From sequence record OP292654.1: a stretch of 64,000 nucleotides of DNA, one strand, 5' to 3'. The translations under genes and the position numbers were made by a program. The notes beneath the pieces are model-generated. The model was not told where the DNA came from and ran no database searches. It saw only the letters and a list, made by a program, of their open reading frames with translations. The first letter of the stretch is position 1. Each line of letters opens with the position of its first letter. Shown piece after piece: positions 1 through 64,000 of this stretch.

Positions 1-1
1 A

Positions 2-97
2 ACTGAAAAGTTCAAAGATTGGGAAGGTTGCCGTATCATTGAGCTAGAGGGCGTACAGCGTTCAGTTCTTGCTGCGTTTGCGGAAGAAAATCTATAA
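2..97 (+). CDS. 3' end of a gene starting upstream of the window
   Basis: Open frame from base 2 (TEKFKDWEG...EENL) to TAA at 95-97. Confidence 0.5.
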   Translation, partial: TEKFKDWEGCRIIELEGVQRSVLAAFAEENL

Positions 98-130
98 CAA
101 CTTTAGGGGATACATTGTATCCCCTTTTTA

Positions 131-325
131 ATGGACAATAATATGAAAGTATCATTCTACGCTAAAGCTGATCCGCAAGTTGGTGATTCAGATATAGTAT
201 TCTATAAGTGTATTAAAGTTCGGCACTTCTGGTGCTTCAAATTCAGTACTGAAATATCTTACGGTACTGAAACAGAGATGAAAACACTTGCTGATAATCT
301 CACAAAAATTTATGGAACGTCCTGA
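131..325 (+). CDS. hypothetical protein
   Basis: ORF track, co-directional with neighbours. Confidence 0.6.
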   Translation: MDNNMKVSFYAKADPQVGDSDIVFYKCIKVRHFWCFKFSTEISYGTETEMKTLADNLTKIYGTS

Positions 326-341
326 TTTTTTGTGCTATAAT
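312..341 (+). promoter_or_regulatory. sigma70-like promoter, extended -10, 18-bp spacer class
   Basis: ATGGAA-N18-TATAAT with TG at the extended -10 position (TGTGCTATAAT). Confidence 0.55.
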
Positions 342-459
342 GTGTATATTAAACAGCAAAATGGCTCTCCATTTCTGGCCTGTAGAATGACAAACAACAT
401 AAATAGTTACATAACAATAATAATATTTTGACTCCATGTTGTTTTATTACATTCTTTAT

Positions 460-483
460 AGGCCACGCAATGTGGCCTTTTTT
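460..483 (+). terminator. intrinsic terminator
   Basis: AGGCCAC-gcaat-GTGGCCT followed by T-run. Confidence 0.75.
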
Positions 484-497
484 ATTGGATAAAGAAA

Positions 498-2615: not shown

Positions 2616-3452
2616 ATGAATTCGGATAATTTATTTCTGGCACGTGATCTTCTTATGCACGTAGAACCAGGTGAAGTAATCAGTACACAATACAATCACG
2701 AATATGAAACTCGTGCAGGCTATGACAAATATCCTGCTGAAGTAATTGAGTGGCTAACTAATTCTAAACTTCTAGTACTGGCTGATGTTATCTCAATCTC
2801 TGAACAGTCGTCAGTTGAAATCTTCAAGGTATCAGTACTTGGTGAGCAAGTTGCTGAATTCGCAAATCTAGCAGATTTTTATGATGCTGGTGTGGCTGGC
2901 GAAGAACATTTCCTGAAAACGGGTCGTTCCATATACACGGCACTTGATATGTTCAATGAAGCTGAATTAGAACCAATGGTATCATTGCTAACTCGTGAAG
3001 AACAGGATGCGTATAATCATTATTATCGTATTGCTGCTATGAAAGCACTTCAGGGGCGTACTGGACAATCTAAACCAATTCCAGAGATTGAAGTTAATGA
3101 TTTCGTAGCTCACCGTAACCAAGTAATGGATACTGGTTTAACTAACATGTTCCAGTTATCAGTTGAACTCGGTTCTAAAGGTACTGATGATACTCGCACC
3201 AATAACTATGTATTCAAGAAATGCATGGAAGAACTTGGTGAAATGGCATTAGAAGACAATATCGCAGAAGGCTTGTCTTATAAAGATGCTGGTTCTGATG
3301 GTGTTGCTGGTGAAGCTGTTGACCTCGCAATTTGTGCGATGGATATGTTCGCATTACAACATCCAGATAATACAGCAGAAGAAATTCATTTCTTATTCCT
3401 TGAATATATGGGTAAGAAACTGAACAAATGGAAAGAAACACTAGACCAATAA
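2616..3452 (+). CDS. protein with C-terminal MazG-like NTP pyrophosphatase domain
   Basis: KCMEELGEMALE...GEAVDLAICAMD matches the MazG EExxE...ExxD pattern. Confidence 0.6.
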   Translation: MNSDNLFLARDLLMHVEPGEVISTQYNHEYETRAGYDKYPAEVIEWLTNSKLLVLADVISISEQSSVEIFKVSVLGEQVAEFANLADFYDAGVAGEEHFLKTGRSIYTALDMFNEAELEPMVSLLTREEQDAYNHYYRIAAMKALQGRTGQSKPIPEIEVNDFVAHRNQVMDTGLTNMFQLSVELGSKGTDDTRTNNYVFKKCMEELGEMALEDNIAEGLSYKDAGSDGVAGEAVDLAICAMDMFALQHPDNTAEEIHFLFLEYMGKKLNKWKETLDQ

Positions 3453-3473
3453 TGGTCAGATAAGGATTTAAAA

Positions 3474-3764
3474 ATGACAGACCACGCAAAAACAAAAGCG
3501 TTATCGGACGTTCTTGCGGAAATGAATAATCAAGATGCTAAATGGGGTGCGGATCGTAATCAACACCCTTTCTTATGGCAAGTGATTTTAGGTGAAGAAT
3601 TTGGCGAAGTATGTCAAGCTATTCTTCATGATGAATTTGGCGGTTCCCATGCGGGTACAGCACGTGATGAATTGGTACAAGTTGCGGCAGTGGCCTTGCA
3701 ATTCATTGAGCAATATGATAGACTACAATCTGAGGTGAAAGATGAAGATTCGTCCAGTTCATAA
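3474..3764 (+). CDS. MazG-like nucleotide pyrophosphohydrolase
   Basis: ILGEEFGEVCQA...RDELVQVAAVA. Confidence 0.75.
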   Translation: MTDHAKTKALSDVLAEMNNQDAKWGADRNQHPFLWQVILGEEFGEVCQAILHDEFGGSHAGTARDELVQVAAVALQFIEQYDRLQSEVKDEDSSSS

Positions 3765-4026
3765 CCATATCATTGCTAAGAAAGTAGTGAATGAGGCAAA
3801 AAGTGCTGGTGGTATTCTTCTCACTGCTTCAGGTGAAGATGAAAGTACTCATGCTGAAGTACTACAAATCGGACCAGGTTTCCTGTCTGAACTTAATGTA
3901 GGTGACATTGTTACTTATGTTGAAGGTGACAAACGAGTTCATTCTGAAAAGATTGATAATGAAGATATTCTTATTATGCCAGAAGATTGTATTCTAGGTG
4001 TAATTGAACAAGATAAAGGTGAATAA
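3742..4026 (+). CDS. groES: co-chaperonin GroES
   Basis: MKIRPVHNHII...KSAGGILL...VLQIGPG...VGDIV...ILGV. Confidence 0.9.
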   Translation: MKIRPVHNHIIAKKVVNEAKSAGGILLTASGEDESTHAEVLQIGPGFLSELNVGDIVTYVEGDKRVHSEKIDNEDILIMPEDCILGVIEQDKGE

Positions 4027-4027
4027 C

Positions 4028-5296
4028 ATGCATTCGGCATTGGTAGAGTTACAAGAACGCGGTTTGATTAATCAAAGTACTGATATTACAGTACTGTCAA
4101 AATTACTTGACGAAGGTTCAGCAGTGTATTGTGGCTTTGACCCAACTGCTGATTCATTACACATTGGTAGCTTACTGCCTCTGTCTGTAATGAAAGTGTT
4201 TAAGAAACACGGTGTAAAAGTTATTGCTCTCGTTGGTGGGGCAACAGGCTCCATCGGTGATCCGAGCTTCAAATCAGAAGAACGTTCTATGATGGATTGG
4301 GATACAATCAGTCGTAACGTAGCTGGTATTAGTACTGTTATCACTTCCATTCTTGGTGATGATGTTGAAATCGTAAACAACTTTGATTGGATGCGTGACA
4401 TTAATATGCTTACGTTCCTTCGTGATTACGGTAAAGCATTCACTGTGAATAACATGATCAATAAAGAGTCAGTACGTTCTCGTATTGAACGTCCAGACCA
4501 AGGTATTTCATTTACTGAATTCGCATACCCAATCCTTCAGGGTATGGATTTCGAATTCCTGTACACCGAAATGAATTGTAAGATTCAAATCGGCGGTTCA
4601 GACCAATGGGGTAATATGATTGCTGGTACTGACTTAATCCATAAACTTCATGGTAATGATGCTGAGTGTGGAGTTATTACGCTTCCACTTGTTACTAAAG
4701 CTGATGGTACTAAATTTGGTAAATCAGAATCTGGTACTATTTGGATGACAGGACAGCGTACTACGCCGTATCATTTCTTCCAGTTCTGGCGTAACATTGA
4801 AGATACTGAAGTACCTAAACTGTACCAGTACTTCAAACCATTTACTTTTAGTGTACAAAATATTGTGAATGAAATGACTAACGGTGATCCAAATATCGTT
4901 AAGTTACAATTCGCACATGCTATGACATTACTTGTTCATGGGTCAGAAGCGGCTGATACTGCTCGTAATCTTTCCAATTTCTTCTTTGGAAAGAACGTAG
5001 AACTGAATGATGAAGCTGTTGATATGATGATTAGCAGTGGATTCAAAGTACAGGAACAGACTACTACGCTTGACTTAGTAGCTATTCTGGTAGATTCAGG
5101 TTTAGCTGATTCTCGTAAGATGGCACGTGAGTTCATCAACAATGGTGCGATCAAAATCAATGGTCGCAAAGTAAACGAATTCTACGATACTAAAGAGAAC
5201 GTCTTCACTGAAGATGTGGACATTATTGATTCAAAACATTTTGTCCTTCAGCGTGGTCGTAATGCTTTCGTCGTGGTGAAAAACTTAAGGCGTTAA
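4028..5296 (+). CDS. tyrS: tyrosyl-tRNA synthetase
   Basis: YCGFDPTADSLHIGS, QIGGSDQWGN, KFGKS, C-terminal S4-like domain; probable start ATG 4028. Confidence 0.95.
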   Translation: MHSALVELQERGLINQSTDITVLSKLLDEGSAVYCGFDPTADSLHIGSLLPLSVMKVFKKHGVKVIALVGGATGSIGDPSFKSEERSMMDWDTISRNVAGISTVITSILGDDVEIVNNFDWMRDINMLTFLRDYGKAFTVNNMINKESVRSRIERPDQGISFTEFAYPILQGMDFEFLYTEMNCKIQIGGSDQWGNMIAGTDLIHKLHGNDAECGVITLPLVTKADGTKFGKSESGTIWMTGQRTTPYHFFQFWRNIEDTEVPKLYQYFKPFTFSVQNIVNEMTNGDPNIVKLQFAHAMTLLVHGSEAADTARNLSNFFFGKNVELNDEAVDMMISSGFKVQEQTTTLDLVAILVDSGLADSRKMAREFINNGAIKINGRKVNEFYDTKENVFTEDVDIIDSKHFVLQRGRNAFVVVKNLRR

Positions 5297-5297
5297 T

Positions 5298-5549
5298 ATG
5301 ACCACATTTCTGATATTCTCAGTACTGATTGGTATCGCTTTCAATATTTTTCTTTTCTTCTTAGACAAGAAAGAACAATATGTGAAAGCATATAACCCTA
5401 AAACTAATGAATATGAACATATTCCTATGTTCAGCTTCAGGTCAGATACACGTTGGAAAGTACTAATGATTAGTGGTTTTGTTCCATTTCTCAATATTGC
5501 TTTTCTTGCGTTAATGCTGATTGATATTGTGGGTTACTTGCGTAAGTAA
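5298..5549 (+). CDS. membrane protein
   Basis: Two hydrophobic segments. Confidence 0.7.
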   Translation: MTTFLIFSVLIGIAFNIFLFFLDKKEQYVKAYNPKTNEYEHIPMFSFRSDTRWKVLMISGFVPFLNIAFLALMLIDIVGYLRK

Positions 5550-5706
5550 AAATTGAGAAATACATAAGCCGTGCTTTCTGGCAAAAACCAGATGTAAGAC
5601 CGTTTACACTTCAATGCTAGTACTGGATGATCCCTACTCGTTAGAACTACCAACTTCCAGGGCGATGTATTTCTTTTAAGTAAGAAAAATGGACTTTGTT
5701 GTTGAT

Positions 5707-5714
5707 TATAAATA
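5707..5714 (+). promoter_or_regulatory. T4-type late promoter
   Basis: Exact TATAAATA ~30 nt before the SD-supported ATG at 5743. Confidence 0.55.
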
Positions 5715-5742
5715 TCTTTTTGCAATCAACAAGGACAATGGA

Positions 5743-6597
5743 ATGAACAAAAAAGAAGCTAAAGCACTTGACAAATATTATACTAATGATTCTGTAGCTG
5801 AATACTGCTATCAGGAATTTGTCAAGTTCTGTACAAAATATAAGTCAGAACCGTACACGATTATTGAGCCAAGTGCTGGCGGTGGAGCGTTTCTTAATAT
5901 TATTCAGGAAGACAAAATAGGGTTTGACATTCTCCCTGAATCTGATAATATTATCCAAATGGACTTCATCAACGGGAACATTGAAGAATATCTACCACAA
6001 AATGATGTGGTGTTTTTGGGAAATCCACCTTTCGGTAAGAAAGGAGATTTAGCTATTCAATTCATCAATAAGTGTTTTGAATACAGTACTATCGTGGGGT
6101 TCATTCTCCCTGTACAATTCAGAAAATATTCTGCTCAAAAACAGCTTGACAGTAGAGCTAGATTGCTGTATGATATTGACTTAGATGAAGATTCGTTTAA
6201 TATTGTGGGTGAATCTTATGGTATTCGTTCATCATTCCAAATATGGGGAATTGGTGAATTTGAAGAAGAAAACCTAAGAATCGTTGAAAAGCCTCAAACT
6301 AAACTTGACATGTTCGAAATGTACCAGTACAATAGAACAGAAGCAGCAATGAAATATTTCGATTATGATTGGGATTTTGCTGTTCACCGTCAAGGTTACT
6401 ATGACTTCTCAGAGATCATTCGAAGTAAAGACGAGTTGAATCCGAAACGGCAGTACATATTCTTTAAAGCACACGATGCTGAAGTACTGGAAAATTTGTT
6501 GAACCTTGACTTCGTTCAATTGTCTAAAAAGAATGCTGGAATTCCAGGATTCGGAAAGGCAGATGTTGTTGAGGAATATCTTAAAAAATATTCATAA
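5743..6597 (+). CDS. amino-DNA methyltransferase (gamma-class motif order, probably N6-adenine)
   Basis: DKYYT (motif X), IIEPSAGGGAF (motif I), GNPPFG (motif IV); SD AAGGA before 5743. Confidence 0.85.
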   Translation: MNKKEAKALDKYYTNDSVAEYCYQEFVKFCTKYKSEPYTIIEPSAGGGAFLNIIQEDKIGFDILPESDNIIQMDFINGNIEEYLPQNDVVFLGNPPFGKKGDLAIQFINKCFEYSTIVGFILPVQFRKYSAQKQLDSRARLLYDIDLDEDSFNIVGESYGIRSSFQIWGIGEFEEENLRIVEKPQTKLDMFEMYQYNRTEAAMKYFDYDWDFAVHRQGYYDFSEIIRSKDELNPKRQYIFFKAHDAEVLENLLNLDFVQLSKKNAGIPGFGKADVVEEYLKKYS

Positions 6598-6609
6598 CCT
6601 GGAGTGTAT

Positions 6610-7311
6610 ATGTCAACCATCGTAAAAACTCAGATCGCAAAAAGTATCAACGACGCACTGTTCATGTTCAAAACTGCTGAGAAAGATCAGGTATTCGATG
6701 TTCGTTATGTTGTCCGTGGCGGCACTGACGTAAACAAAATCGAAGTACTGTTCATGGCACACATGGCAGCAAACATGGATCTACCAATCATGTACTCTGC
6801 GGAATTCAAAGAGAGCTACAAAGAGCATTGGGCTGAAAGTGGTAAGTACGCAGCATTGAACGAAGAAACCACTCCAGACGTACTGGCGTTCAACACGCAA
6901 GAAGTAATTCCAGATTGTATCGTCCATAACCCGAATGGTTCACAATCATGGCCTGATATTCTGGTGATTAAAGATAACATCGGTTATCCACTGGAAATCA
7001 AAACTGCGAAAGATACTGTTCCAAAAATGAACAGCGGTATCTTCCGTCTGAATACCCCATACATCTGTATGCGTAAATCAGACGACCCGAAAGACCGTGT
7101 GATGCGTCTGTTCATGGGGTCAGATATGGTATCGGCTGAGAACATTGTTCAGTGGCGTGAAGCTGGGGAAATGGTTGACCGTATCGTTAAAGCAACAAAC
7201 GCTCCAAACGAACGCTGGTGTTATGACAAGTACTTCAAAGCGGAAGATTGGTTCCCGAAAGATTGGGCGACTAAGCACGAAGCATCTGTTACCAAATACA
7301 TCAATAGCTAA
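6610..7311 (+). CDS. PD-(D/E)xK nuclease, restriction-endonuclease-like
   Basis: NPNGSQSWPDILV...YPLEIK; directly after the MTase, shared terminator. Confidence 0.6.
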   Translation: MSTIVKTQIAKSINDALFMFKTAEKDQVFDVRYVVRGGTDVNKIEVLFMAHMAANMDLPIMYSAEFKESYKEHWAESGKYAALNEETTPDVLAFNTQEVIPDCIVHNPNGSQSWPDILVIKDNIGYPLEIKTAKDTVPKMNSGIFRLNTPYICMRKSDDPKDRVMRLFMGSDMVSAENIVQWREAGEMVDRIVKATNAPNERWCYDKYFKAEDWFPKDWATKHEASVTKYINS

Positions 7312-7316
7312 CAAGT

Positions 7317-7343
7317 AAGCACCGTATAATACGGTGCTTTTTT
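7317..7343 (+). terminator. intrinsic terminator
   Basis: AAGCACCGTA-taa-TACGGTGCTT plus T-run. Confidence 0.85.
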
Positions 7344-7363
7344 AATTTAGAGGATGAAAAAAA

Positions 7364-8056
7364 ATGAATATTGCTGAAAAGTACTATTGGATTACCAATC
7401 ACCCGAAATATGTTCCATTTGGTCACGATGCTGTTATTGAAATTACCCCTCATATGGTTTGTCCAGAAACCAACCGCATTGAAGATTTGGCATTGCTCAA
7501 TACCAAATTGCGTTTTTGGGTTGAGTTAATGATCCCATATGAAGATAAAGAAAATAACTATCACGGTTTCGCCCATGAATGGGAACTGGATTGCGGCGGT
7601 GATACATGGGAAGAAGCAGTTGAAACATTGTACCAGTTAGTACTGGAAAAGTACGGTGACTATGGTGATGATGAACTGGAAGAACACCGTAGGGTTTGGT
7701 TAGAAGAATCTAAAATCAAAATTCCAGGATATATTAGCATTTACGATAAACTGATGGGAGATTTAGATAACTTCAAAGCACCAGGCCCAGATTTATCTAA
7801 ACCAATCGTTAAACTTAAAGATTATGAAATCGAAAGTTTTAAAGAAGATGTTGAACATCTTGGAGTTCTGCTGCCTGTCCTTCAGGCAAAGTTGGCTAAT
7901 CCAGAACTAACTATGCAAGACTATAGTGATATTGAATTACAAATCACCTGTGTTGACCACGATTTGGAAGTAGCGAAACTCAGTCTAAAATATGGATATA
8001 ATGTAGAAGTATATGGTATCAGGGATGAAAATAACGAAACTGATTCGCATACTTAA
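7364..8056 (+). CDS. hypothetical protein
   Basis: ORF track, SD GAGG. Confidence 0.75.
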   Translation: MNIAEKYYWITNHPKYVPFGHDAVIEITPHMVCPETNRIEDLALLNTKLRFWVELMIPYEDKENNYHGFAHEWELDCGGDTWEEAVETLYQLVLEKYGDYGDDELEEHRRVWLEESKIKIPGYISIYDKLMGDLDNFKAPGPDLSKPIVKLKDYEIESFKEDVEHLGVLLPVLQAKLANPELTMQDYSDIELQITCVDHDLEVAKLSLKYGYNVEVYGIRDENNETDSHT

Positions 8057-8390
8057 CAATATGCCCCATCCTAAACAAGTCAAGAACACACGTAAAAAAT
8101 ACAAAGTTATTGCGTGTGCTCTTGATAAGAAAGGTAGAGTACTAGCAATTAGAACTAATGATTACGAGTGCTCACATCCTTTACAAAAACACTTCGCAGT
8201 ACTAGTAGGGAAACCCGAAGCAATATTCCTCCATGCCGAAATAGCCGCTTTAATTGCTGCGAAAAAAGAAGTACACAAACTTCTGATTGCCAGAATAGAT
8301 CGAAATGGTAATCCATTACCAGCAAAACCCTGTCCAATATGTGAAAAAGCAATTGAAGCTTTTGGAGTAAAAGAAATTGAATATACCTAA
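8013..8390 (+). CDS. zinc-dependent cytidine/dCMP deaminase-like protein
   Basis: HAE...PCPIC deaminase motifs; real start may be 8025 or later. Confidence 0.8.
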   Translation: MVSGMKITKLIRILNNMPHPKQVKNTRKKYKVIACALDKKGRVLAIRTNDYECSHPLQKHFAVLVGKPEAIFLHAEIAALIAAKKEVHKLLIARIDRNGNPLPAKPCPICEKAIEAFGVKEIEYT

Positions 8391-8703
8391 TGAAGAACAT
8401 CTAGCTAAGATAATTAAATTTTACAATGGGCTTAACTTTAAAACTAAGTTCAATTTAAGTACTGAACAATATAGATACTTACGTAAAAAATATAAAATCA
8501 CCAAACTTGTTCCTCGTATAGCAAGAATTTGTTGGAAATGTGATAGAAATTTTGTAAGTCAAACTATTTTAAACACGAATATGTGTACAATATGCTATAA
8601 TGAAAATATAAAATCATATTATTATAATTTTATTGCTATTCAAAAAGTTCCTAAAGTTGGAGTAGTGATAAAATCTTTAAAGGATATTAGTTATGCTCAG
8701 TAA
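8377..8703 (+). CDS. basic Zn-finger protein
   Basis: CWKC...CTIC. Confidence 0.55.
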   Translation: MNIPNEEHLAKIIKFYNGLNFKTKFNLSTEQYRYLRKKYKITKLVPRIARICWKCDRNFVSQTILNTNMCTICYNENIKSYYYNFIAIQKVPKVGVVIKSLKDISYAQ

Positions 8704-9313
8704 CGAACAACGTCAAGAAGTTATCAAACGCTATCCTCACGAAACTGTGAAATTTATTTCAGAATACTTAGGTATAAGTAAGTCAACAGTTGAGAATATT
8801 GTTAAACAAACCAATCTGGTTCGTTTACATATAGATTCTAGAATTCCAAGTAATGAGTTTTTAGCATCTTATTATAATGTTCCCATTCAGATGCTTCTTG
8901 ATATTGAAGAAACTGCGGTTTTTCTTAAACCATTTCCTAAAATGTCAGATAATCTACGTAAGATTTTAGTACGCAAGTATGGTAAACCAATGAGTGAACA
9001 ACGTTGGAATCGCATCACATCAGTACTAACACTTGAACAAATACGTCATATTATGATTTATTATCCTCAGTTTACTAATCGTGCGTTAGCTAATGATTTA
9101 AATGTTGATCGCAGTGTAATTACTGATGTTGCTAATACATATTCTCTTGAAAAATTAGAAAGGGAAGAAATGTTTTGTGATACATGCCGAGTAAATCATT
9201 TACCACCACGTTCTTATACTAGTGGTAATAATTGCAAAGAATGTTGGACGAAACGTATGTCAGATTATCAATACATTTATTATCCGTCTAAAATGGCAGC
9301 TAAAAATGAATGA
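8693..9313 (+). CDS. putative DNA-binding protein (HTH plus C-terminal Zn ribbon)
   Basis: ISEYLGISKSTVENIV and LANDLNVDRSVITDV HTH-like helices; CDTC...CKEC. Confidence 0.55.
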   Translation: MLSNEQRQEVIKRYPHETVKFISEYLGISKSTVENIVKQTNLVRLHIDSRIPSNEFLASYYNVPIQMLLDIEETAVFLKPFPKMSDNLRKILVRKYGKPMSEQRWNRITSVLTLEQIRHIMIYYPQFTNRALANDLNVDRSVITDVANTYSLEKLEREEMFCDTCRVNHLPPRSYTSGNNCKECWTKRMSDYQYIYYPSKMAAKNE

Positions 9314-9560
9314 ATCTTTATTAGCAATAATCGAAATTTTTAAAAAGGGAGAGGAATCTGACATGTATATCAGTACTGTTGAATACCTCTTTAAAACTAT
9401 TTGTGATGAAAAAGAAGCTGGTACTTACGATATGAAAAAACATTTCGAAAGTGCTATTCAGATTCACATACGTCTGCGTGGTCATTATCAGGCAGATTTT
9501 AATGGACCACTACTATCGTGGTACAGAAGATTCATTGGGTTACACGGAGGCTTAAAATGA
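9306..9560 (+). CDS. hypothetical protein
   Basis: ORF track; probable start 9306. Confidence 0.6.
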   Translation: MNESLLAIIEIFKKGEESDMYISTVEYLFKTICDEKEAGTYDMKKHFESAIQIHIRLRGHYQADFNGPLLSWYRRFIGLHGGLK

Positions 9561-10114
9561 ATACTGTTATTATTAATCTTGTTGGTGGACCATGTTGTGG
9601 TAAATCAACGACTGCTGCTGGTCTATTCGCAGCACTAAAACTAAAGTCTAAACAGAAAGTCGAGATTGTTACTGAAGTAATCAAAGACTATGTTTATGAT
9701 GAAAATAAAATGGCAATGCAAGACCAGGTTCTAATTACTGCTCAGCAAAATCACCGCCTATTCCGATTAAATGGAAAGGTGGATTTTGTCGTATCTGATG
9801 CTTCACTACTGAATGGTATCATGTACAATGAATTCTATGATGATGTTGATAATATCAGTTCTGAAATTGCTTTCGAACTATATAATCAATATGAGAATAT
9901 TGTATTCCTGCTTCCACGTAAGCCTGAATATGATCAGTACGGAAGAACTCAAACGTTGGAACAGGCAAAGGAAATTGACGCAATCTTTGTTCGCAATCTA
10001 GAACAAATGAATATTCCATTTATTGATATGCGTGAATATACTCATGAAGAAATGCCTATTCGTATTCTTGAAGTACTGAGTGAAAAGTTTAGTTTTGAGG
10101 CTAAAGGCGTCTAA
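9557..10114 (+). CDS. P-loop NTPase/kinase (NadR-like AAA_28 type)
   Basis: INLVGGPCCGKST Walker A. Confidence 0.75.
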   Translation: MNTVIINLVGGPCCGKSTTAAGLFAALKLKSKQKVEIVTEVIKDYVYDENKMAMQDQVLITAQQNHRLFRLNGKVDFVVSDASLLNGIMYNEFYDDVDNISSEIAFELYNQYENIVFLLPRKPEYDQYGRTQTLEQAKEIDAIFVRNLEQMNIPFIDMREYTHEEMPIRILEVLSEKFSFEAKGV

Positions 10115-10116
10115 TT

Positions 10117-10233
10117 ATGTGGCATAACATATTAATGTTTTTCTTTTGGTTCTACGTTATAGCACTTGGTTCTATTGGAGTTATGGCAATTTATGCCGTT
10201 ATTGACTTCTGTAGCTTCCTGAACAAACGTTAA
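10117..10233 (+). CDS. 38-aa single-TM protein (absent from ORF track)
   Basis: Read manually: MWHNILMFFFWFYVIALGSIGVMAIYAVIDFCSFLNKR*. Confidence 0.55.
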   Translation: MWHNILMFFFWFYVIALGSIGVMAIYAVIDFCSFLNKR

Positions 10234-10265
10234 CCAAAGTACCAAAACATTGATCTAGATCAAAG

Positions 10266-10292
10266 AAAATACCCCTTCATATGGGGTATTTT
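10266..10292 (+). terminator. intrinsic terminator
   Basis: AAAATACCCC-ttcatat-GGGGTATTTT. Confidence 0.75.
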
Positions 10293-10343
10293 CATTTTAA
10301 GTGGTTTAAATAAACTACCTAACAATTTGACAAGGAGTGTCTT

Positions 10344-12149
10344 ATGAATAATGAAAGACTGTATAATGATGTATCTGCATTAATAAACCAAAGCAATAAA
10401 GATATAATGAATGAGAATGCTAATAAGGATGCTAAGATTGTAAACACGCATCGTGACTTACTAGCAGGTATTTTATCTAAGCATTACGCCGAGGATGAAA
10501 TATCAGAAGAACTTATGCTTTGGCACAAGAACGGATATGGACATATACATGATCTTGATTACTTCATAAGCCCTTTGACTAACTGTTGTTTAGTTAATTA
10601 CAGAGACATGTTAGAGAACGGTTTTAAGATCGGAAACGCACAAGTTGGTACACCTAATAGTATTGGTGTAGCAAGCACCGTACTGACACAAATAGTACTA
10701 GCAGTATCAGCAAGTCAATATGGTGGTCAAACATTGGCACACATTGATTTTGGTCTTGAACCATACGTTCAAAAGTCCTATAACAAGCTTCTAGAGCAAC
10801 AAAAAGAGTTCGACCTACCGGACGAGTATGTAGAGAAGACCCTCCAAAAAGAGGTGTACGACGCTATGCAAGCCCTTTTATATCAGGTTAATACCATTAC
10901 CAGTAGCAACGGTCAAACACCATTCGTGACTATCACAATGGGTTTAAACACGTCTAAATTTGGTAAAATGATTACAGACTCGTACTTAAAAGTACATGAA
11001 AAAGGTTTAGGTGTAGATGGTAGTACACCAGTATTCCCTAAAGTTGTATTCTTTCTTGAAGATGGTGTGAATATGAAGGAGTCTGATCCTAACTATGACC
11101 TTAAACTTCAAGCAATGAAAACCAGTGCTAAGAGAATTTATCCTGATTTCGTATCCGTACCATTGAATAAGAAAGTAACTGGTAGTACTAGTACGGCTGT
11201 TTCTCCTATGGGCTGTCGTTCATTCCTTGGTAAATGGGATAATAACGGTACTGAACAATATGATGGAAGATTTAATCTAGGGGTGGTATCTATTAATCTT
11301 CCACTACTTGCTCTTGAATCTAAATCCGATGGAGAATTCTTTGGTAAATTGGATTATCACATGACAATGGCTTATCGAGCACAAATGAATCGTGTAGAAC
11401 GGTTGAAAACAATGAAAGCTCGACAAAATCCGACTATGTTTATGGAAGGTGCTATTGCTCGTTTAAATGCTGATGATACAATTGACAAATTATTTTATAA
11501 CGGATATGCTAGTATAAGTATTGGTTATGTTGGATTGGCTGAATGTTCTGAAATTATGCTACAACAGTTAAGTAAGGATTATTGTAAATCCATCTTGCAC
11601 TATATGAAATATAAATGTGAACAATTTAAAGAAGAAAGTACTATCGCATTTAGTTTATATGGTACACCAGCAGAGAGCTTATGTTATAAATTTGCGAAAG
11701 CAATAGAAGAAAAATACCCAAATGTACTAAAGAGAGATTTTATAACAAATTCATTCCATCAACCAGTATGGGTTGAATCATCTCCTTTCAGTAAATTTGA
11801 TTACGAAGAAAGTTTTGCGTACTTAAGTAATGGTGGTAACATCAGTTATGTTGAGACGCCAAATCTTTCTAACAATTTAAAAGCACTTGAAGTACTGATC
11901 GATTATGCGTATGACCGTATTCCATATTTTGGAATTAATCAGCCAGTCGATAAATGTTATAAGTGTGATTTCGAAGGTGAATTTTCGGTAGATAAAGTCG
12001 GTTTCCATTGTCCACAATGTGATAACCGAGAAGAAGGTACTATGTCAGTTATACGTAGAGTATCTGGTTATCTGAGTGCTCCGAATAGTAGACCTTTCAA
12101 TACTGGTAAACAACAAGAAGTTATACAAAGAATCAAACACGGAAGCTAA
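10344..12149 (+). CDS. nrdD: anaerobic ribonucleoside-triphosphate reductase (class III)
   Basis: HIHDLD, TNCCL, PMGCRS, GRFNLG, TPAESLC, Zn ribbon CYKC/CPQC, glycyl-radical loop RRVSGYL; no ATP cone, no intein. Confidence 0.95.
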   Translation: MNNERLYNDVSALINQSNKDIMNENANKDAKIVNTHRDLLAGILSKHYAEDEISEELMLWHKNGYGHIHDLDYFISPLTNCCLVNYRDMLENGFKIGNAQVGTPNSIGVASTVLTQIVLAVSASQYGGQTLAHIDFGLEPYVQKSYNKLLEQQKEFDLPDEYVEKTLQKEVYDAMQALLYQVNTITSSNGQTPFVTITMGLNTSKFGKMITDSYLKVHEKGLGVDGSTPVFPKVVFFLEDGVNMKESDPNYDLKLQAMKTSAKRIYPDFVSVPLNKKVTGSTSTAVSPMGCRSFLGKWDNNGTEQYDGRFNLGVVSINLPLLALESKSDGEFFGKLDYHMTMAYRAQMNRVERLKTMKARQNPTMFMEGAIARLNADDTIDKLFYNGYASISIGYVGLAECSEIMLQQLSKDYCKSILHYMKYKCEQFKEESTIAFSLYGTPAESLCYKFAKAIEEKYPNVLKRDFITNSFHQPVWVESSPFSKFDYEESFAYLSNGGNISYVETPNLSNNLKALEVLIDYAYDRIPYFGINQPVDKCYKCDFEGEFSVDKVGFHCPQCDNREEGTMSVIRRVSGYLSAPNSRPFNTGKQQEVIQRIKHGS

Positions 12150-12150
12150 A

Positions 12151-12780: not shown

Positions 12781-12781
12781 T

Positions 12782-13300
12782 ATGATACCATTCGACTTGA
12801 CAAAACGTGAAAATATGTTGCTATATTTTTCTCTAAAGGAAAAGCATGACTATTCTTTAGGGAATAAGCGTGATATAATGATACACACAATTAGTTGCTA
12901 TCTTAAACCGTATGTTCAGTCGAAAAGTACTATTATCATTCCTGAAAGTTCTTCTGATTTTATTTTTAAAGTTGTGAAGAACTTAGGAAAAGATATTCGT
13001 ATTGCGAAGAAAAATAATATTCAGTACTTTAAAGACTTAGCTCCTACGCTTGGTCTTCAAAAGGCTGAATTACGTAGTCATTTAGAACGTATGGAAGAAA
13101 TGGGTGATACCTTTAAGATTAATATGCTTAAAGCAACCCAACGAACAAAATATATAGAGCATCTTTTTACAAGGACTGTAGTGAAGCAAAATTCTATTAT
13201 CATTGATGATAGTAATTTTAGTGGAAGTACTCGTGATGCTCTAATATTCAGTACTAAAATCAATAATTACATTCCTATATTCTCTAAGGATAAGTTATGA
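12782..13300 (+). CDS. phosphoribosyltransferase-fold protein
   Basis: IIIDDSNFSGST resembles the PRPP-binding loop. Confidence 0.5.
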   Translation: MIPFDLTKRENMLLYFSLKEKHDYSLGNKRDIMIHTISCYLKPYVQSKSTIIIPESSSDFIFKVVKNLGKDIRIAKKNNIQYFKDLAPTLGLQKAELRSHLERMEEMGDTFKINMLKATQRTKYIEHLFTRTVVKQNSIIIDDSNFSGSTRDALIFSTKINNYIPIFSKDKL

Positions 13301-17154: not shown

Positions 17155-17166
17155 AAGGATTTACAT

Positions 17167-33121: not shown

Positions 33122-33266
33122 CGTTCCCCTTTGCGGGGGGATGCAAATAGATCAACAAACCCCGTCAGTATAAACAGTGTTAAACGTATTAAATAGTTTA
33201 AAGGAATTGAGTTAAGTACGAACAACGTGAGTACTAACGAAAATTCTTGACTAACGGAGTTAGGCA

Positions 33267-45848: not shown

Positions 45849-45873
45849 TAGTACAATATAAGGGAGTACTTTT

Positions 45874-53436: not shown

Positions 53437-56091
53437 ATGGCTGATTTACTATCACCTGGTGTAAGTGTAACAGTTACCGACGAGACTATTAGTGCTACTA
53501 GTGGTAACGGAACAGTGCCTTTGTTTGTCATTGCGACAGCACAAGATAAACTTGTGACAGGCAGTACTTCTGTGGCTACAGGTACAACTAAAGCTAACGC
53601 TGGTACACTACAACTTATTACATCGCAAAGAAATGCTCTTGAAACTTACGGATCACCTATTTTTCAATCAAGTAATGGTTCTGTAGTTCAAGGCGATGAA
53701 CTTAACGAATATGGTCTTCATGCACTATACAGCTATATGGGTATCGCTAACCGAGCTTATGTAGTTCGTGCTGATATTGACCTAGCACAACTAGCACCAG
53801 CAGCAACTGAACCTACCGGTCCAGTATCTAATGGTACACTATGGTTAGATACAAGTGCGACACAAATTGAAGCATATGTTGCTTCAAAAGACAACCCACA
53901 AAGTTTTTACGACTGGACAGTTAAAACTGTTACTATCGTAAGCGAAGCAGACATTGATGATGTTGATACTTCAGGTTTGAATGTAGACGATTTAGTACTA
54001 CGCCATAACCCATCGAACGGACAAATGCTAATGTACAAGTACGAAGCTGCTGGTCTAGTTCAAGTAGAAACTTACTTGTCTCCAATCAATAAAGTACCAA
54101 CTGGTGTATCTGTAGAAAAAGGAAATATCTGGATTCGTGATGGTTACACAAAGAATGGTTCTAATTATTTCGGTACACGTTTTGTTGTTAAGCGTTTCGC
54201 TTCACTAACATCCGTATGGACTGAAGTTAATGTTTGGACAGGTAACAGCTTCTATGAAATTGAAGCGAAATCTGCTACCTTCGATAACACTTATTTCGGT
54301 GCTCTTTTTGATGAAGATAGTAAGAGTTTCACTCTTTATACCAAATCTGGTTCTATCGCATCTATTAGTGCTCCAGCAACACCAATTGGACAATCTTCAA
54401 GTCAAGTAGCTTCTGCTGCTGGTTCTTTAACCATCAAGTTCTTGAATAAATCTTATACTGTTGTTGCGGTGAATTCAGGTGAAGTAATTAATACTGCTAC
54501 CTTAATCGCTAATCTAAATCAAAGTGCTGACCTAATCAACGCTGGTTTCACTTTCACTGGTACTAACGCTCTTGTTGTAACAAACAAAAACGGTTATAGT
54601 TTCCAAACTACAAGTACTGGTCAACAAATCTTTAACACTATTGATTTGGCAAAATTAACTGTAGATTCAAGTAACTATGTTCAAGTAAACAATGCTAACC
54701 TACGTGTTTCTTCAAGTACTCCAACTGCTCAAGCAGCAAATGGTACTTACTGGTATAACTTCAGTAACTCTGATTCCTTAACTGTGGGTCTATATGTTGC
54801 TAACGTCAGTACTAACACATGGGATGCTATTGACCCTAATACTAATATGTACGTTCAACTAGATGAACCAGCAGCAGACCGTGATTTTTGGGTACAACCA
54901 CTATCACAAGGTGTTGATGGATATGTATTCTATCGTAATGTTAGTGGAACTTGGGTTAAACTAGATGACACTGATCAAAGTACTCTAAATGGTATGATCT
55001 TCGATGACTTCACTACTGGTGATGTTCCTGCTGCTGAATTGTATCAAAACGGTATGCTTGCGGTAGACTTAGGTACTACTGAAGGTGTTGTAAAAGTTAT
55101 GACTAATGGTGTTTGGACTGTTGCTAGTGGTGTTGCTCTAAACGGTGCTGGTCTATTTGGTCGTGCTGCTCAGCGTAACATTGTAGTTGAAGCTCTAGCA
55201 TCTGTTGTTGTTTCAAACGAAGACATTCGTGCTGAAAGTATTCAGTTCAACCTAATGTGTGTTCCTGGTTATGTAGAACTTCTAGATGAACTAGTAACCC
55301 TAAACACTGACCGCAAAGAAACTGCTTTCATTGTTACCGATGTTCCAGCACGTCTAGCACCAAATGCTACTGATGTTCAAGCTTGGGCTACTAACGCTAA
55401 CAACGCAGCATCTAACGGTGATGTTGGTCGTGTAACTGCTTACTCCTATGCTGCTCAATATATGGGCTGGGGTCTTGGAACTAACGTTGATGGTTCTGAA
55501 GTAGCAGTACCAGGTAGTACTATTGCTATGCGTACCTATGCTTACAGCGATAGCGTAAGTTATGTATGGTATCCACCAGCAGGTACTTCACGTGGTGTTG
55601 TAAGTAACGCAGCAAGTATTGGTTATATCAATGACGAAGGTGAATATGCTCCCGTAGTATACAACCAAGGTCAACGTGATACCATGTACGTTAATAAGAT
55701 TAACCCAATTGCGATGCGTCCAAATCGTGGATTACTAGTATACGGAGATAAAACTCTAGCTGCTGACGATACATCAGCACTAAGCCGTGTAAACGTTGCT
55801 CGTCTAGTAGTTTATATTCGTACACAACTAGCTATTTTGGCAGAACCGTTCCTATTCCGTTTGAACACAGCAAGTACTCGTCAAGAGTTTACTTCTGTAG
55901 TTAACAGTTTCCTAGCTGAGATTGTTCAACTAAATGGTCTATACGACTTCCTAGTAGTTTGTGACGAATCAAACAACACAACTTCACGTATTGATGCTAA
56001 TGAATTGTGGATGGATATTGCACTTGTTCCGACTCGTTCAATCAACTTCATCTATATTCCAATCCGTTTGGAAAACAGTTTAACATCTTAA
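53437..56091 (+). CDS. contractile tail sheath protein
   Basis: LLSPGVSVTV, WYPPAGTSRG, INPI, YGDKT, RVNVARL, CDESNNT, P.RSINFI. Confidence 0.95.
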   Translation: MADLLSPGVSVTVTDETISATSGNGTVPLFVIATAQDKLVTGSTSVATGTTKANAGTLQLITSQRNALETYGSPIFQSSNGSVVQGDELNEYGLHALYSYMGIANRAYVVRADIDLAQLAPAATEPTGPVSNGTLWLDTSATQIEAYVASKDNPQSFYDWTVKTVTIVSEADIDDVDTSGLNVDDLVLRHNPSNGQMLMYKYEAAGLVQVETYLSPINKVPTGVSVEKGNIWIRDGYTKNGSNYFGTRFVVKRFASLTSVWTEVNVWTGNSFYEIEAKSATFDNTYFGALFDEDSKSFTLYTKSGSIASISAPATPIGQSSSQVASAAGSLTIKFLNKSYTVVAVNSGEVINTATLIANLNQSADLINAGFTFTGTNALVVTNKNGYSFQTTSTGQQIFNTIDLAKLTVDSSNYVQVNNANLRVSSSTPTAQAANGTYWYNFSNSDSLTVGLYVANVSTNTWDAIDPNTNMYVQLDEPAADRDFWVQPLSQGVDGYVFYRNVSGTWVKLDDTDQSTLNGMIFDDFTTGDVPAAELYQNGMLAVDLGTTEGVVKVMTNGVWTVASGVALNGAGLFGRAAQRNIVVEALASVVVSNEDIRAESIQFNLMCVPGYVELLDELVTLNTDRKETAFIVTDVPARLAPNATDVQAWATNANNAASNGDVGRVTAYSYAAQYMGWGLGTNVDGSEVAVPGSTIAMRTYAYSDSVSYVWYPPAGTSRGVVSNAASIGYINDEGEYAPVVYNQGQRDTMYVNKINPIAMRPNRGLLVYGDKTLAADDTSALSRVNVARLVVYIRTQLAILAEPFLFRLNTASTRQEFTSVVNSFLAEIVQLNGLYDFLVVCDESNNTTSRIDANELWMDIALVPTRSINFIYIPIRLENSLTS

Positions 56092-56129: not shown

Positions 56130-56201
56130 GTAGTACTCCTTAGAACAGTAAAGTTTATAAATACATTAAAGATTATTCCTTAAATTATTGGGAGATTAAT
56201 A

Positions 56202-57746: not shown

Positions 57747-57756
57747 GGAGTACTAA

Positions 57757-60450: not shown

Positions 60451-60452
60451 TT

Positions 60453-61019
60453 ATGAGTCTTTTAGAAGAAATGTTTGATGGTCAACCAGAACCATTGAAT
60501 GAACGTCCTTATAGTCGTACACAATCAGCTATTGATTCGGCAAAAGGCAAAGTAAAAGGTATATTTGGTTCAGGACAAGTTGAGCAAGGTGCTCAAGAAA
60601 CTGGACAAATGGCAAACCAACTATGGAGTGACTTCAAACGTTATATTGGACGTAAGTACGGTTCACATCCACAAGCAGTACCATACGCAGATGTAGCAGC
60701 ATTTTTTAAAGGTAATAAACTCGATACCTCTTTCTTAGGTGATAATGAACGTCGTTCATTCGTTCCTAAAGATGTTGGTGCGGCATTAATGAAAGCAGTT
60801 CAGAAGCTAAATACTGACTACGGCAATGACGCTCCAGATCAACAAGGCGGTAATGACCAGCAACAAGGCCAGCCACAACAGGGTCAGCCTCAAGGTCAAG
60901 GACAAAATAATCCACAACCAAGCCAAGGACAAGGTGGAAATTCAGGATCAGGAATTAATGATCGTCTTTCTTCACTATCTCCGGCTGATCGAGCTAAGCT
61001 ACTAAGACTAATTTCTTAA
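60453..61019 (+). CDS. hypothetical protein with Gln/Gly-rich linker
   Basis: ORF track. Confidence 0.7.
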   Translation: MSLLEEMFDGQPEPLNERPYSRTQSAIDSAKGKVKGIFGSGQVEQGAQETGQMANQLWSDFKRYIGRKYGSHPQAVPYADVAAFFKGNKLDTSFLGDNERRSFVPKDVGAALMKAVQKLNTDYGNDAPDQQGGNDQQQGQPQQGQPQGQGQNNPQPSQGQGGNSGSGINDRLSSLSPADRAKLLRLIS

Positions 61020-61031
61020 TAGGAGAAGAAT

Positions 61032-62495
61032 ATGTTTAAATCTCTACAGAGTGGCAATTCGATTCCAAATAATTATGTGTATACATCCAATCGAGGTACT
61101 GAGTATATGTACCTCGAAGGTTCATGGGTTAATTGTGAAACCATGAAAATTGTAGAAAATGCTCATACATTCAAAATGAATCAATCAGCGATTCGTCAAA
61201 TCGCAGAACATAACAAAAAAAGTTCCTTGCAAATAGGCAAGAACTATGTTATAAACGAGTCTGAATACACCTATATTGGGCGTAATAACTTCTCGCTACA
61301 AGGGAACCTACTTTCTGAAAGTATGAATACTCGTATTCAACAATTAGTTGAAGCTGAGAATGCTCCAGAATTTAGTGATCTAAAATTTGGTGATAAAGAA
61401 AATGTATCCCTTCCTCCACCACATGGTTTTACTTTAGATGGTGGTGATTATAAATGGTCAGATAAAGGTTATTGGTGGGGTAAAGACCAAAATGCTAATG
61501 GTCAAACTTATACTGGTAAAGTACAATCAAAAGATCTTATTCGAGAATTGAATAAAGATGCTTATGATAAAATTCAACATTATAATAAAACTGATCCAAT
61601 TCCAGTAGGAACTACAGTAAATTATAAAGGAACACCAGTAACATGGAATGGTGATTATTTTTATTCAGAAAAAACTGGTAAATTACCTGACACTATTTGG
61701 CATAAGTTTGAAACATATTTTGAAGATAATTATAACCGAGATGGTACACCTAAATCTTCTGATGAAAATACACAAGATCAAAGTACTGACCAAACAACTG
61801 ATGATCAATCCCAAGACCAAAATTCTAATGATAATGATACTTCACAAGGTTCAAGTACTGATTCAGCAACTGAAGTACCAAATGGATATGTTTATAAATC
61901 CAAAAAAGGTAACAGTTACTATAAGAAAAATGGTCAATGGTTCAATTCAGCTACTAAGAAACCTATTAATAGTTCCTCAGTACCTATGCTAGAACGTTCA
62001 GCACAGGCTGAAATTTCTAAGTTTAATGCTTCTTCTCCAGTGAAAATTGGTCAAGAATTTAAATCCAAGAAAGGTATTACATATCGTTATGTTGGTGGAA
62101 ATCGTTTTATTTCTGATAATGGTAAACTATTACCTCCAGATGTAGCACAAAAAGTACTGGCAAATTTATCACAACAACAATCAAGTGATGAAAGTTCTCC
62201 AGAGGGTCAACCACAAGGTGAACCACAAGATCAATCTCAAGGTTCAAGTACTGATACCAGTACTCCTGAAGGTCAGCCAGAACAAGGTTCAAATAATGAT
62301 TCACAAGATGCTCCTGAAGGTGATGACCCATTACAGGCACTTGCTAACGATATTAAAGCAAGCCCACTTGCTCGTAAGATTGTAGTACTTCTAAGTCGTG
62401 GTGATGATTTATCACTACTAGCTGCTGATATTATGCTTTCTGGACAGCAAAAGGAAGCAACAGAGATTCTAAAATCATTAAATAATGAAGATTAA
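61032..62495 (+). CDS. protein with internally repeated beta-rich modules and acidic linkers
   Basis: PNNYVYTSNRG / PNGYVYKSKKG repeats. Confidence 0.7.
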   Translation: MFKSLQSGNSIPNNYVYTSNRGTEYMYLEGSWVNCETMKIVENAHTFKMNQSAIRQIAEHNKKSSLQIGKNYVINESEYTYIGRNNFSLQGNLLSESMNTRIQQLVEAENAPEFSDLKFGDKENVSLPPPHGFTLDGGDYKWSDKGYWWGKDQNANGQTYTGKVQSKDLIRELNKDAYDKIQHYNKTDPIPVGTTVNYKGTPVTWNGDYFYSEKTGKLPDTIWHKFETYFEDNYNRDGTPKSSDENTQDQSTDQTTDDQSQDQNSNDNDTSQGSSTDSATEVPNGYVYKSKKGNSYYKKNGQWFNSATKKPINSSSVPMLERSAQAEISKFNASSPVKIGQEFKSKKGITYRYVGGNRFISDNGKLLPPDVAQKVLANLSQQQSSDESSPEGQPQGEPQDQSQGSSTDTSTPEGQPEQGSNNDSQDAPEGDDPLQALANDIKASPLARKIVVLLSRGDDLSLLAADIMLSGQQKEATEILKSLNNED

Positions 62496-62516
62496 TTATA
62501 AAAGGAATTAGTTCTT

Positions 62517-63458
62517 ATGAAAAAACAAATTAATGAGGCATCAGTTCGTATAGATGTTCAAGGTTTAGAATCTAGCGATCTTGACACACTATCCCGTATG
62601 CTTGCTCTCGCAGGGCAAGCTGAACGTGGTTCCTCTCAATTAGGTGGAATGACTTCAATTCCTGCTATTGCTCCACTAGATTTAGATAGTATGGGCGGGG
62701 ATACTGAAACTCAACCTATTATGAGTCCTGATATGGCTCCTAGTGCTGATGATATGTCTGGTGCTGGTGACGATGCTCTAGGCTCAGCAGTCAGTGATTT
62801 AGCTGGCTCAGTGACAGATTTTGGTGATGATTCACTTGACGGCGGGGTTGCTGGTGGTGTAGACTCTATGGATGCTCCAGAAGAACCAAGCTTAGGATTA
62901 GATGAACCAGAAATGGATTCTACTGATATGGGTGATGATGATTTTGATATGGGTCGTATGTCTTCCCTCGCAGGTATTCGCGAAAGTGTTGATGACGATG
63001 AATCAGATGATATTGACGCAGAAAGCAGCGATGCCGCTGAAGAAGATGCTGATGAATCTGTTTCAGAAAGCCTCCTACCAGATTTATCTCTAGACGAAGA
63101 TTCAATTGCTACTGATTCTCAAAAAGAATTCGGTCCATTCCGTTCAGAACATGAATGTGTAATTGATGGTCAACGTCAAACTAATGGTTTCGAAGGTGAC
63201 AACTTTATCGTTGTTCCTAAAGGTAACGCATTCTACTGGCGTAGAACTATGCAAGAAGATGCTACCACTGAACCAAACCCTGAATTCTATGATGACGAAG
63301 GTATTCAACATTCTCGACATGCGTATAAAGGTAAACAACCTGGAACTGCATTAGGTGACAATCCACTTGTACATGAAAGTGAAGAAGATGATGAATCCGT
63401 TGAGGACATTTTCGAATCAATTAATAACAAGTATAAGAAATTTATGGATGGTCTATAA
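62517..63458 (+). CDS. highly acidic protein (possible prohead core/scaffold)
   Basis: D/E-rich low complexity; repeated ..SRM..LAG motif. Confidence 0.6.
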   Translation: MKKQINEASVRIDVQGLESSDLDTLSRMLALAGQAERGSSQLGGMTSIPAIAPLDLDSMGGDTETQPIMSPDMAPSADDMSGAGDDALGSAVSDLAGSVTDFGDDSLDGGVAGGVDSMDAPEEPSLGLDEPEMDSTDMGDDDFDMGRMSSLAGIRESVDDDESDDIDAESSDAAEEDADESVSESLLPDLSLDEDSIATDSQKEFGPFRSEHECVIDGQRQTNGFEGDNFIVVPKGNAFYWRRTMQEDATTEPNPEFYDDEGIQHSRHAYKGKQPGTALGDNPLVHESEEDDESVEDIFESINNKYKKFMDGL

Positions 63459-63865
63459 TGAGTAGCATGAAAAATTTAATGGAATCTATTGATGACATTT
63501 ATGAAGCAGACGAAGATTCGTTTGAACAAGAATCTGAGCTTTCTGCTCCAGAACTATTAAAAGAAATCGTAGGTTCCCTACGTGATCTATCAACTAAAGT
63601 TGCTGATGGATCAATCGAAGATTTATCATCCCTAACTTCTGATTTACAAACTATCTCCGATTCACTAAAAGAACTAACTGGTTCTGATGAAAGTTCAGAA
63701 GATGAATATTCTGATGAATTTGAATCTAATGACGGTGAAGATGAACTTGAAGAAGATTATGGTGCTGAAGGTATGGGACCATCTTTCGATGCTAATGGCA
63801 CTCAGAATTATGAGAATCCACAAGGTTCTTCATATCCTGAGAAGAAAGGTTTTGTGGGAATCTAA
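63458..63865 (+). CDS. highly acidic hypothetical protein
   Basis: ORF track. Confidence 0.65.
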   Translation: MSSMKNLMESIDDIYEADEDSFEQESELSAPELLKEIVGSLRDLSTKVADGSIEDLSSLTSDLQTISDSLKELTGSDESSEDEYSDEFESNDGEDELEEDYGAEGMGPSFDANGTQNYENPQGSSYPEKKGFVGI

Positions 63866-64000
63866 TCATGGTCCCAAGAACCAACAGTACTGAAATTCAA
63901 TATGGTGTATTAAATGCTATTAAGAAAGTTTATGAATTTGATTCTGAACTCAATGATAGAATGATACTGTTATCCATTTTTGATAATTACAGAACTGGTG

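Follow-up and report, generated by a model that had tools for sequence, protein, structure and literature searches.

We sought to determine why a stretch of jumbo phage DNA should be crowded with copies of one short palindrome, AGTACT. The stretch, a 64,000-bp window, is 100% identical to positions 62001-126000 of OP292654.1, the genome of Xanthomonas phage XbC2, a 367.9-kb RaK2/GAP32-like jumbo myovirus assigned to Mimasvirus; the nearest relatives of XbC2 are Erwinia phage Kaldavass (~90% identity) and the GAP32, CBB and RaK2-like jumbo phages. The G+C content of the window is 36.7%, and all of its annotated genes lie on the plus strand. A first-pass annotation, made from the letters of the window alone, had pointed to a roughly ten-fold excess of AGTACT and ascribed it to selection at the level of DNA. 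Both parts hold, and the trait was moreover found to be clade-wide, to peak at the genome terminus and to be built into early promoters, which lay beyond what that annotation could see. We tentatively read AGTACT as a clade word for a dimeric DNA-binding protein that would mark phage DNA and gate early promoters, a reading to which we give somewhat less than an even chance.

Abundance of AGTACT and codon-aware controls

In the window, AGTACT is found 186 times, as compared with 19.1 ± 4.3 times in dinucleotide-preserving shuffles (shuffle maximum 30). Whole-genome counts, which cover 348 kb of XbC2, give 1,026 copies versus 106 expected, a 9.7-fold excess corresponding to about one site per 340 bases (2.95 per kb). 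The expected rate of about one per 3 kb, on which the first-pass estimate was based, agrees with the rate of about one per 3.0-3.5 kb given by the G+C content, and the manual counts behind it were accurate: each of the ten positions claimed for bases 1-2405 is exact, the tail-sheath gene, said to hold at least eight copies, holds exactly eight, and the four copies placed between genes are all present. The features concerned are as follows.

1..64000, no strand: AGTACT, 186 dispersed copies (2.9 per kb), 176 in genes (all three frames) and 10 between genes
33230..33235, no strand: intergenic AGTACT between XbC2_161 and XbC2_162
45865..45870, no strand: intergenic AGTACT between the lysozyme gene and an S30EA-like gene
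53437..56091, plus strand: tail-sheath gene with 8 AGTACT, a conserved structural gene (Pfam Phage_sheath_1C)
56132..56137, no strand: intergenic AGTACT 3′ of the sheath gene
57749..57754, no strand: intergenic AGTACT between XbC2_203 and XbC2_204

Under Markov models of orders 0-3, AGTACT ranks first among the 4,096 hexamers in the window, with no other hexamer as deviant; the order-4 model alone absorbs the excess, because it is supplied with the enriched pentamers. In the whole-genome counts it is the sole hexamer palindrome to reach at least twice its expectation. Avoidance of a restriction site would appear as under-representation, the opposite of what is seen here. The view that the full hexamer is selected, rather than GTAC, is borne out by TGTACA, which occurs at expectation, and by GGTACC and CGTACG, neither of which occurs in the window. 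The accompanying remark that the other NGTACN hexamers are near expectation, made for bases 1-2405, does not extend to the window as a whole, in which hexamers that differ from AGTACT by a single letter are raised 2-4-fold (GGTACT 49 versus 12.7 expected, AGTACG 25 versus 10).

For codon-aware controls, 93 plus-strand genes were called (92% coding), which contain the 176 intragenic sites. Shuffling of synonymous codons yields 41 ± 5.7 copies, shuffling of codon order yields 24 ± 4.9, and a shuffle preserving both protein and dinucleotides yields 100 ± 6 (z 12.6 for the observed number); together, these three schemes rule out codon, dinucleotide and dipeptide bias as the cause of the excess. 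The first-pass annotation had dismissed codon bias, and had named disappearance of the enrichment in codon- and dinucleotide-preserving shuffles as the outcome that would speak against it. The enrichment outlasts them and, as had been claimed, the sites occupy all three codon phases, with 86 in the frame AGT-ACT, 67 in xxA-GTA-CTx and 23 in xAG-TAC-Txx.

Approximately 60% of all codon contexts in which AGTACT is synonymously accessible are filled with it. Serine-threonine dipeptides are encoded by AGT-ACT in 86 of 139 cases (19 expected from codon usage), and the word fills 67 of the 112 x-Val-Leu contexts and 23 of the 67 [Lys/Gln/Glu]-Tyr-x contexts that are open to it, with occupancy between 44 and 76% in each 10-kb bin of the genome. 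The dipeptides themselves are 1.4-1.5-fold over expectation, Ser-Thr being present 139 times versus 91 expected (Thr-Ser 96) and Val-Leu 145 times versus 102 (Leu-Val 87), and protein sequence has therefore also been shifted towards AGTACT.

Site turnover, flanking symmetry and clade distribution

Codon alignments of orthologues, in which XbC2 sites were compared with generic hexamer windows, show that AGTACT is retained above background: 76% versus 53% in Kaldavass, 37.5% versus 19.5% in GAP32, and 36.7% versus 14.7% in fHe-Yen9-04. At about 70% nucleotide identity, more than 60% of the site positions differ while density is maintained, which indicates that selection acts on AGTACT density, with individual sites turning over. 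Polarisation of gains and losses with an outgroup returned 63 ancestral sites and 1 gain, from too few informative windows.

The sequences surrounding 1,025 sites are biased in a mirror-symmetric manner. At position -1, C is favoured 2.08-fold and G is reduced to 0.41-fold, while at position +1 G is favoured 2.09-fold and C is reduced to 0.34-fold; T is raised 1.44-fold at -4 and A 1.30-fold at +4, and C at -3 and G at +3 are both at 0.70-fold, yielding a weak extended dyad-symmetric site, T-N2-C-AGTACT-G-N2-A. The -1/+1 preference is present in each codon frame, and the 98 non-coding sites show both the -1/+1 and the -4/+4 preferences. More than 90% of XbC2 genes lie on one strand, and the persistence of mirror symmetry despite this asymmetry argues for a two-fold symmetric reader of double-stranded DNA, rather than for an RNA or codon effect; such a reader is implied by the sequence pattern. 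The occurrence in all frames and in non-coding DNA, the dyad-symmetric flanks and the conservation above background agree with the earlier proposal that selection operates on the DNA itself.

Spacing between sites is near Poisson, with a coefficient of variation of 0.94 in the window and 0.92 in the genome, no short-range periodicity, and a longest site-free stretch in XbC2 of 2.2 kb versus a Poisson expectation of 2.35 kb, which rules out periodic spacing or islands. A longer repeat or mobile mini-element is likewise ruled out, as the flanks hold less than 0.25 bit per position beyond the hexamer.

The same enrichment was sought in sampled stretches of related phages.

Kaldavass: 145 AGTACT in 47 kb sampled
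GAP32: 128-133 AGTACT in 50 kb sampled (two overlapping stretches)
CBB: 141 AGTACT in 50 kb sampled
Yersinia fHe-Yen9-04: 136 AGTACT in 50 kb sampled
Serratia BF: 137 AGTACT in 50 kb sampled
E. coli phage ph0011 (Asteriusvirus): 88 AGTACT in 50 kb sampled
Klebsiella RaK2: 105 AGTACT in 43 kb sampled
Hallingskeid: 111 AGTACT in 43 kb sampled
PA5oct (outgroup, L011): 1 AGTACT versus 12 expected in 41 kb sampled
Aeromonas phage 65 (outgroup, L013): 0 AGTACT versus 8.4 expected in 40 kb sampled

All eight sampled clade members, which span Mimas-, Eneladus-, Asterius- and Alcyoneusvirus and Hallingskeid, are enriched about 6-13-fold, while the next relatives, PA5oct (the nearest by tail sheath, at 45% identity) and Aeromonas phage 65, are depleted. 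On this comparison of sampled sequences, the enrichment is a derived character of the RaK2-like clade, reversing the ancestral or usual avoidance.

Other words have been lost. GCGC is absent from the window, from all XbC2 loci (L001, L002 and L014-L018; 0 versus 334 expected in 348 kb) and from the sampled stretches of every clade relative, while the outgroups PA5oct and Aeromonas phage 65 carry 36-44 copies per 40 kb and an E. coli chromosome sample 7.8 per kb; the GCGC purge and the AGTACT enrichment co-occur on the same branch, and either word singly separates phage from E. coli-sample DNA almost perfectly. In XbC2, 29 of the 64 hexamer palindromes are found at no more than 10% of expectation, including all of those with six G/C, most of those with four, and GATATC (8 versus 99); the ratio of observed to expected palindromes is 0.74, 1.15, 0.16 and 0.0 for those with zero, two, four and six G/C, respectively. 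Two non-palindromic departures may be mentioned here. GGGAC and its complement GTCCC are nearly purged (5 and 11 copies, with ~146 expected for GGGAC in 348 kb), and TGCAT (122 versus 424) and ATGCA (231 versus 461) are under-represented, TGCAT being an unexplained modified motif in Kaldavass.

Terminal-repeat region and early promoters

AGTACT density peaks at the left end of XbC2, reaching 5.5 per kb in 1-20 kb, and the non-coding DNA of this end carries 9-13 copies per kb versus 0-6 elsewhere. The left end corresponds to the terminal repeat annotated in CBB (22,456 bp): both contain a terminator with AGTACT arms, as well as a Band_7 and a DUF932 gene. The CBB repeat contains 143 AGTACT, or 6.4 per kb. 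The terminator, annotated as rho-independent in CBB (CBB 10171-10208), has a stem composed of two AGTACT-containing arms, and the same sequence is found in XbC2 (L014 8375-8410).

In both XbC2 and CBB, the sigma70-type early promoters of the terminal-repeat region carry two fixed AGTACT sites, 20-22 bp apart from centre to centre. The first site abuts the -35 box or overlaps it by one base, and the second ends one base 5′ of the -10 box, as would be expected of the operators of a dimeric repressor. Within the terminal-repeat region, and nowhere else, AGTACT starts cluster at two places relative to the -10 box, -29 to -27 and -7. Of 44 promoter-like matches in the CBB repeat, 24 have such a site and 11 have both; outside the terminal region of XbC2, it is present in 1 of 109. 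A search of IMG/VR (2.9 million viral contigs) with a 21-base dual-site pattern returned 59 matches. Apart from those on two fragments, all lie on clade contigs of 354-378 kb, namely CBB, GAP32, BF, fHe-Yen9-04 and six uncultivated genomes. Among the IMG/VR contigs searched, the dual-site architecture is exclusive to this clade.

Genes resembling toxin-antitoxin components were also noted in the early regions: an open reading frame (ORF) with a ParE-like toxin domain follows a 122-codon ORF (L014 11114-11775), and a PrlF-antitoxin-like ORF is found at L018 7229-7537.

The putative reader, rival explanations and known systems

On the reading that we tentatively prefer, AGTACT would be a lineage-specific recognition word for a putative two-fold symmetric (dimeric) DNA-binding protein, most likely phage-encoded or phage-carried, with selection holding the word at near-saturating density on RaK2-like jumbo phage DNA. 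Bound at the ~1,000 dispersed sites, it would preferentially cover or organise phage over host DNA, and at the dual-site early promoters the same protein would serve as a switch seated on its operators, in the simplest case for early shut-off. The sequence data themselves show the enrichment and its dyad-symmetric, DNA-level character, purifying selection combined with site turnover, the limits of the clade, the peak at the terminus and the geometry of the promoters; that a protein reads the word, its phage or host origin, its influence on transcription and the role of the dispersed sites are inferred. A 50-kb sample of the E. coli chromosome contains 0.12 AGTACT per kb, so that phage DNA is ~25 times denser in sites and would therefore be favoured by the reader. 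Among the mechanisms put forward in the first-pass annotation, a dimeric genome-organising protein fits best, while a methyl self-mark seems less likely in view of the Kaldavass nanopore data discussed below. The clade bears a cost in codon choice and in protein sequence to keep up one restriction-type palindrome in about 1,000 copies, and purges most others; this costly upkeep implies that a reader of the sequence lies at the heart of how these phages live. With the word, its flanking preferences and its places in promoters defined, the reading lends itself to a direct test, and AGTACT offers a simple sequence marker for recognising the clade in metagenomes.

It should be kept in mind that several observations weigh against this reading. 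Pfam scans detected no DNA-binding domain among 37 terminal-repeat ORFs, and no reader family among the window genes or selected regulators. The best positional candidate, XbC2_21, lies upstream of an ORF with a ParE-like toxin domain, and its homologues are clade-restricted; its AlphaFold model (predicted local distance difference test, pLDDT, 77; predicted template modelling score, pTM, 0.30) had no structural match, and the dual-site promoter that precedes it in XbC2 is absent in CBB. Neither the 37-ORF Pfam scan nor the XbC2_21 fold search, then, identified the cognate DNA-binding protein that a dimeric repressor would call for. No IMG/VR contig of Asteriusvirus or RaK2 size yielded the exact dual-site pattern, the promoter sites differ from the bulk sites in favouring G at -1, and their fixed positions could stem in part from common descent of duplicated promoters. 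Finally, a transcription-factor role leaves ~1,000 intragenic sites without explanation. Another candidate, XbC2_581 (L018 47194-48339), bears a “DNA condensation” product name, which is misleading, as it matches RCC1 repeats only, and it was rejected as the reader.

A broader scheme, which we regard as possible though rather doubtful, is that of a two-word code by which RaK2-like jumbo phages would distinguish self from host without base modification. In it, AGTACT would be the positive tag, recognised by a phage protein with a role in organising or protecting the chromosome and in gating early promoters, and GCGC would serve as a negative tag, letting a nuclease destroy host DNA only.

AGTACT may instead be the substrate of a DNA enzyme, such as a ScaI-type methyltransferase or endonuclease, a nickase, or the phage type II topoisomerase, with sites being kept since a mark, nick or strand passage is needed along the 368-kb chromosome. 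Contiguous palindromes of 6 bp are characteristic of type II enzymes, GTAC between A and T would suit a 4-base staggered symmetric cut, and XbC2 encodes several methyltransferase-like genes as well as a T4-like topoisomerase. The T4-type outgroups are nonetheless depleted in AGTACT, and Pfam scans of the window genes revealed no restriction-enzyme family. In Kaldavass, which is 90% identical and shows the same enrichment, comparison of native and amplified DNA by nanopore sequencing gave modification at GATC, CCWGG and TGCAT only, with no nick pattern, nicks being reported for a different phage only (PMC11780129). The Dam-family, C5 and N6_N4 methyltransferases equal these three motifs in number, and once Dam and C5 are assigned, the N6_N4 enzyme would more simply be paired with TGCAT; besides them, there are two generic S-adenosylmethionine-methyltransferase-like ORFs, XbC2_125 and XbC2_521, to which no motif is assigned. 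On the present data, the N6_N4 methyltransferase gene of the window (25775-26635) is not linked to the AGTACT enrichment, since the gene is absent at the syntenic place in the still-enriched Asteriusvirus ph0011. Taken together, we consider an enzyme substrate unlikely.

We also hold it quite unlikely that the reader is a conserved Enterobacterales host protein, recruited or titrated by the phage, e.g. a nucleoid or division factor. Early promoters would act before any phage protein is made, the hosts of the clade are nearly all Enterobacterales, and the binding site of SlmA is centred on the same hexamer, with GT-purine required on its 5′ side and pyrimidine-AC on its 3′ side (PMC3020112). 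However, none of the 1,026 phage sites is a full SlmA site (GTR-AGTACT-YAC), the two half-sites occur 25 and 13 times versus 32.5 expected, and the reverse flanks, a pyrimidine at -1 and a purine at +1, are favoured (436 versus 256), so that the SlmA-site model fails. In addition, AGTACT is scarce in the E. coli sample, and XbC2 itself is reported on Xanthomonas.

A neutral drive, in which biased mismatch repair or gene conversion of the very-short-patch kind generates functionless AGTACT, would account for the high turnover of sites and for the 2-4-fold rise of five-of-six neighbours as a halo around the word, but strikes us as improbable. The neighbours that deamination would produce, AGTATT (1.16-fold) and AATACT (0.85-fold), are not depleted, which rules out the very-short-patch model; the Kaldavass data report no modification at AGTACT, and the conservation of sites above background, the shift of proteins towards Ser-Thr and Val-Leu and the fixed promoter positions speak against the absence of function. 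There is very little to recommend a signal in RNA (AGUACU), such as a processing or protein-binding site: a palindrome would reach transcripts in either gene orientation, and nearly all of the DNA would be transcribed, but palindromes make up just 64 of the 4,096 hexamers, the flanks mirror each other even in non-coding DNA despite the strand bias of the genes, and some sites lie 5′ of -35 boxes and hence outside transcripts. Least credible of all is that the excess follows from codon or dipeptide usage, from the purging of 29 other palindromes, or from generic GTAC-step physics. This view could draw on the commonness of Ser-Thr and Val-Leu dipeptides, but is already refuted by the shortfall in the protein-plus-dinucleotide shuffle, by the lack of a second palindrome at twofold or more, and by the counts of TGTACA, GGTACC and CGTACG.

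In cells, iterated signature words (Chi, uptake sequences and HIP1 among them) bring to light machinery by which own DNA is distinguished from foreign DNA. HIP1, the highly iterated cyanobacterial palindrome, is an octamer of cellular genomes with an unsettled function. AGTACT resembles it in being a short, lineage-specific palindrome that occurs at least about once per kb, within genes in every frame as well as in non-coding DNA, beyond what codon-aware controls yield; it differs in that it is a hexamer, belongs to a clade of viruses, is densest at the genome terminus and takes up fixed places in early promoters. The uptake signal sequences and DNA uptake sequences (USS/DUS), Chi and the FtsK-orienting polar sequences (KOPS) are likewise over-represented words that let protein machines discriminate their own DNA or orient on it, but they are asymmetric and orientation-dependent and have known readers, whereas AGTACT is its own reverse complement with mirror-symmetric flanks, and shows no orientation bias of the Chi/KOPS type.

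Among phage proteins, phi29 p6 and SPO1 TF1 are abundant along the phage genome, prefer it over host DNA and repress early promoters; p6 binds most strongly at genome ends and reads bendability, while TF1 reads hydroxymethyluracil DNA. Their coating of DNA and repression of early promoters match the behaviour that an AGTACT reader would have, but neither depends on a discrete word repeated along the genome, and homologues of them were neither sought nor found in XbC2. Closer in geometry are YefM and Phd, small dimers that bind GTAC-core hexamer palindromes over promoters, these compact palindromes being paired and covering promoter boxes as in our case (PMC1802561). Their core, however, is TGTACA or an 8-bp palindrome, the sites are 12-13 bp apart and few per genome, and no protein of the Phd/YefM family was detected among 65 XbC2 proteins scanned. 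A further clade-conserved, enriched phage word is the nick-associated motif WACTRTGAC of Pseudomonas phages, which has 9-13 copies on one strand (PMC11780129); it is tied to nicks and confined to that strand, in contrast to ~1,000 symmetric AGTACT copies without reported nicks. We found no report in the open literature linking AGTACT or ScaI with RaK2-like phages, and AGTACT is not mentioned as a feature in the XbC2, CBB and Kaldavass publications.

Some further peculiarities of XbC2 are worth mentioning. The E. coli-type Chi octamer is about ten-fold over-represented, with 21 copies on the plus strand and 11 on the minus strand versus 2.3 and 1.0 expected; 7 of the 21 plus-strand copies fall within the first 17 kb (XbC2 record 3327-16361, L014), the part homologous to the terminal repeat, and those in the window are at 3805, 21592, 39150 and 62850. 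XbC2 (36.7% G+C) was isolated on Xanthomonas vesicatoria, although it is ~90% identical to an Erwinia phage and all of its relatives infect Enterobacterales. Because of this identity, the hosts of its relatives and the Chi enrichment, its evolutionary home appears to be enterobacterial. Finally, positions 14461-22674 of the window contain three tandem paralogous genes of ~900 codons each, without a Pfam match; CBB has three counterparts, two of which carry an annotation as structural (virion) proteins.

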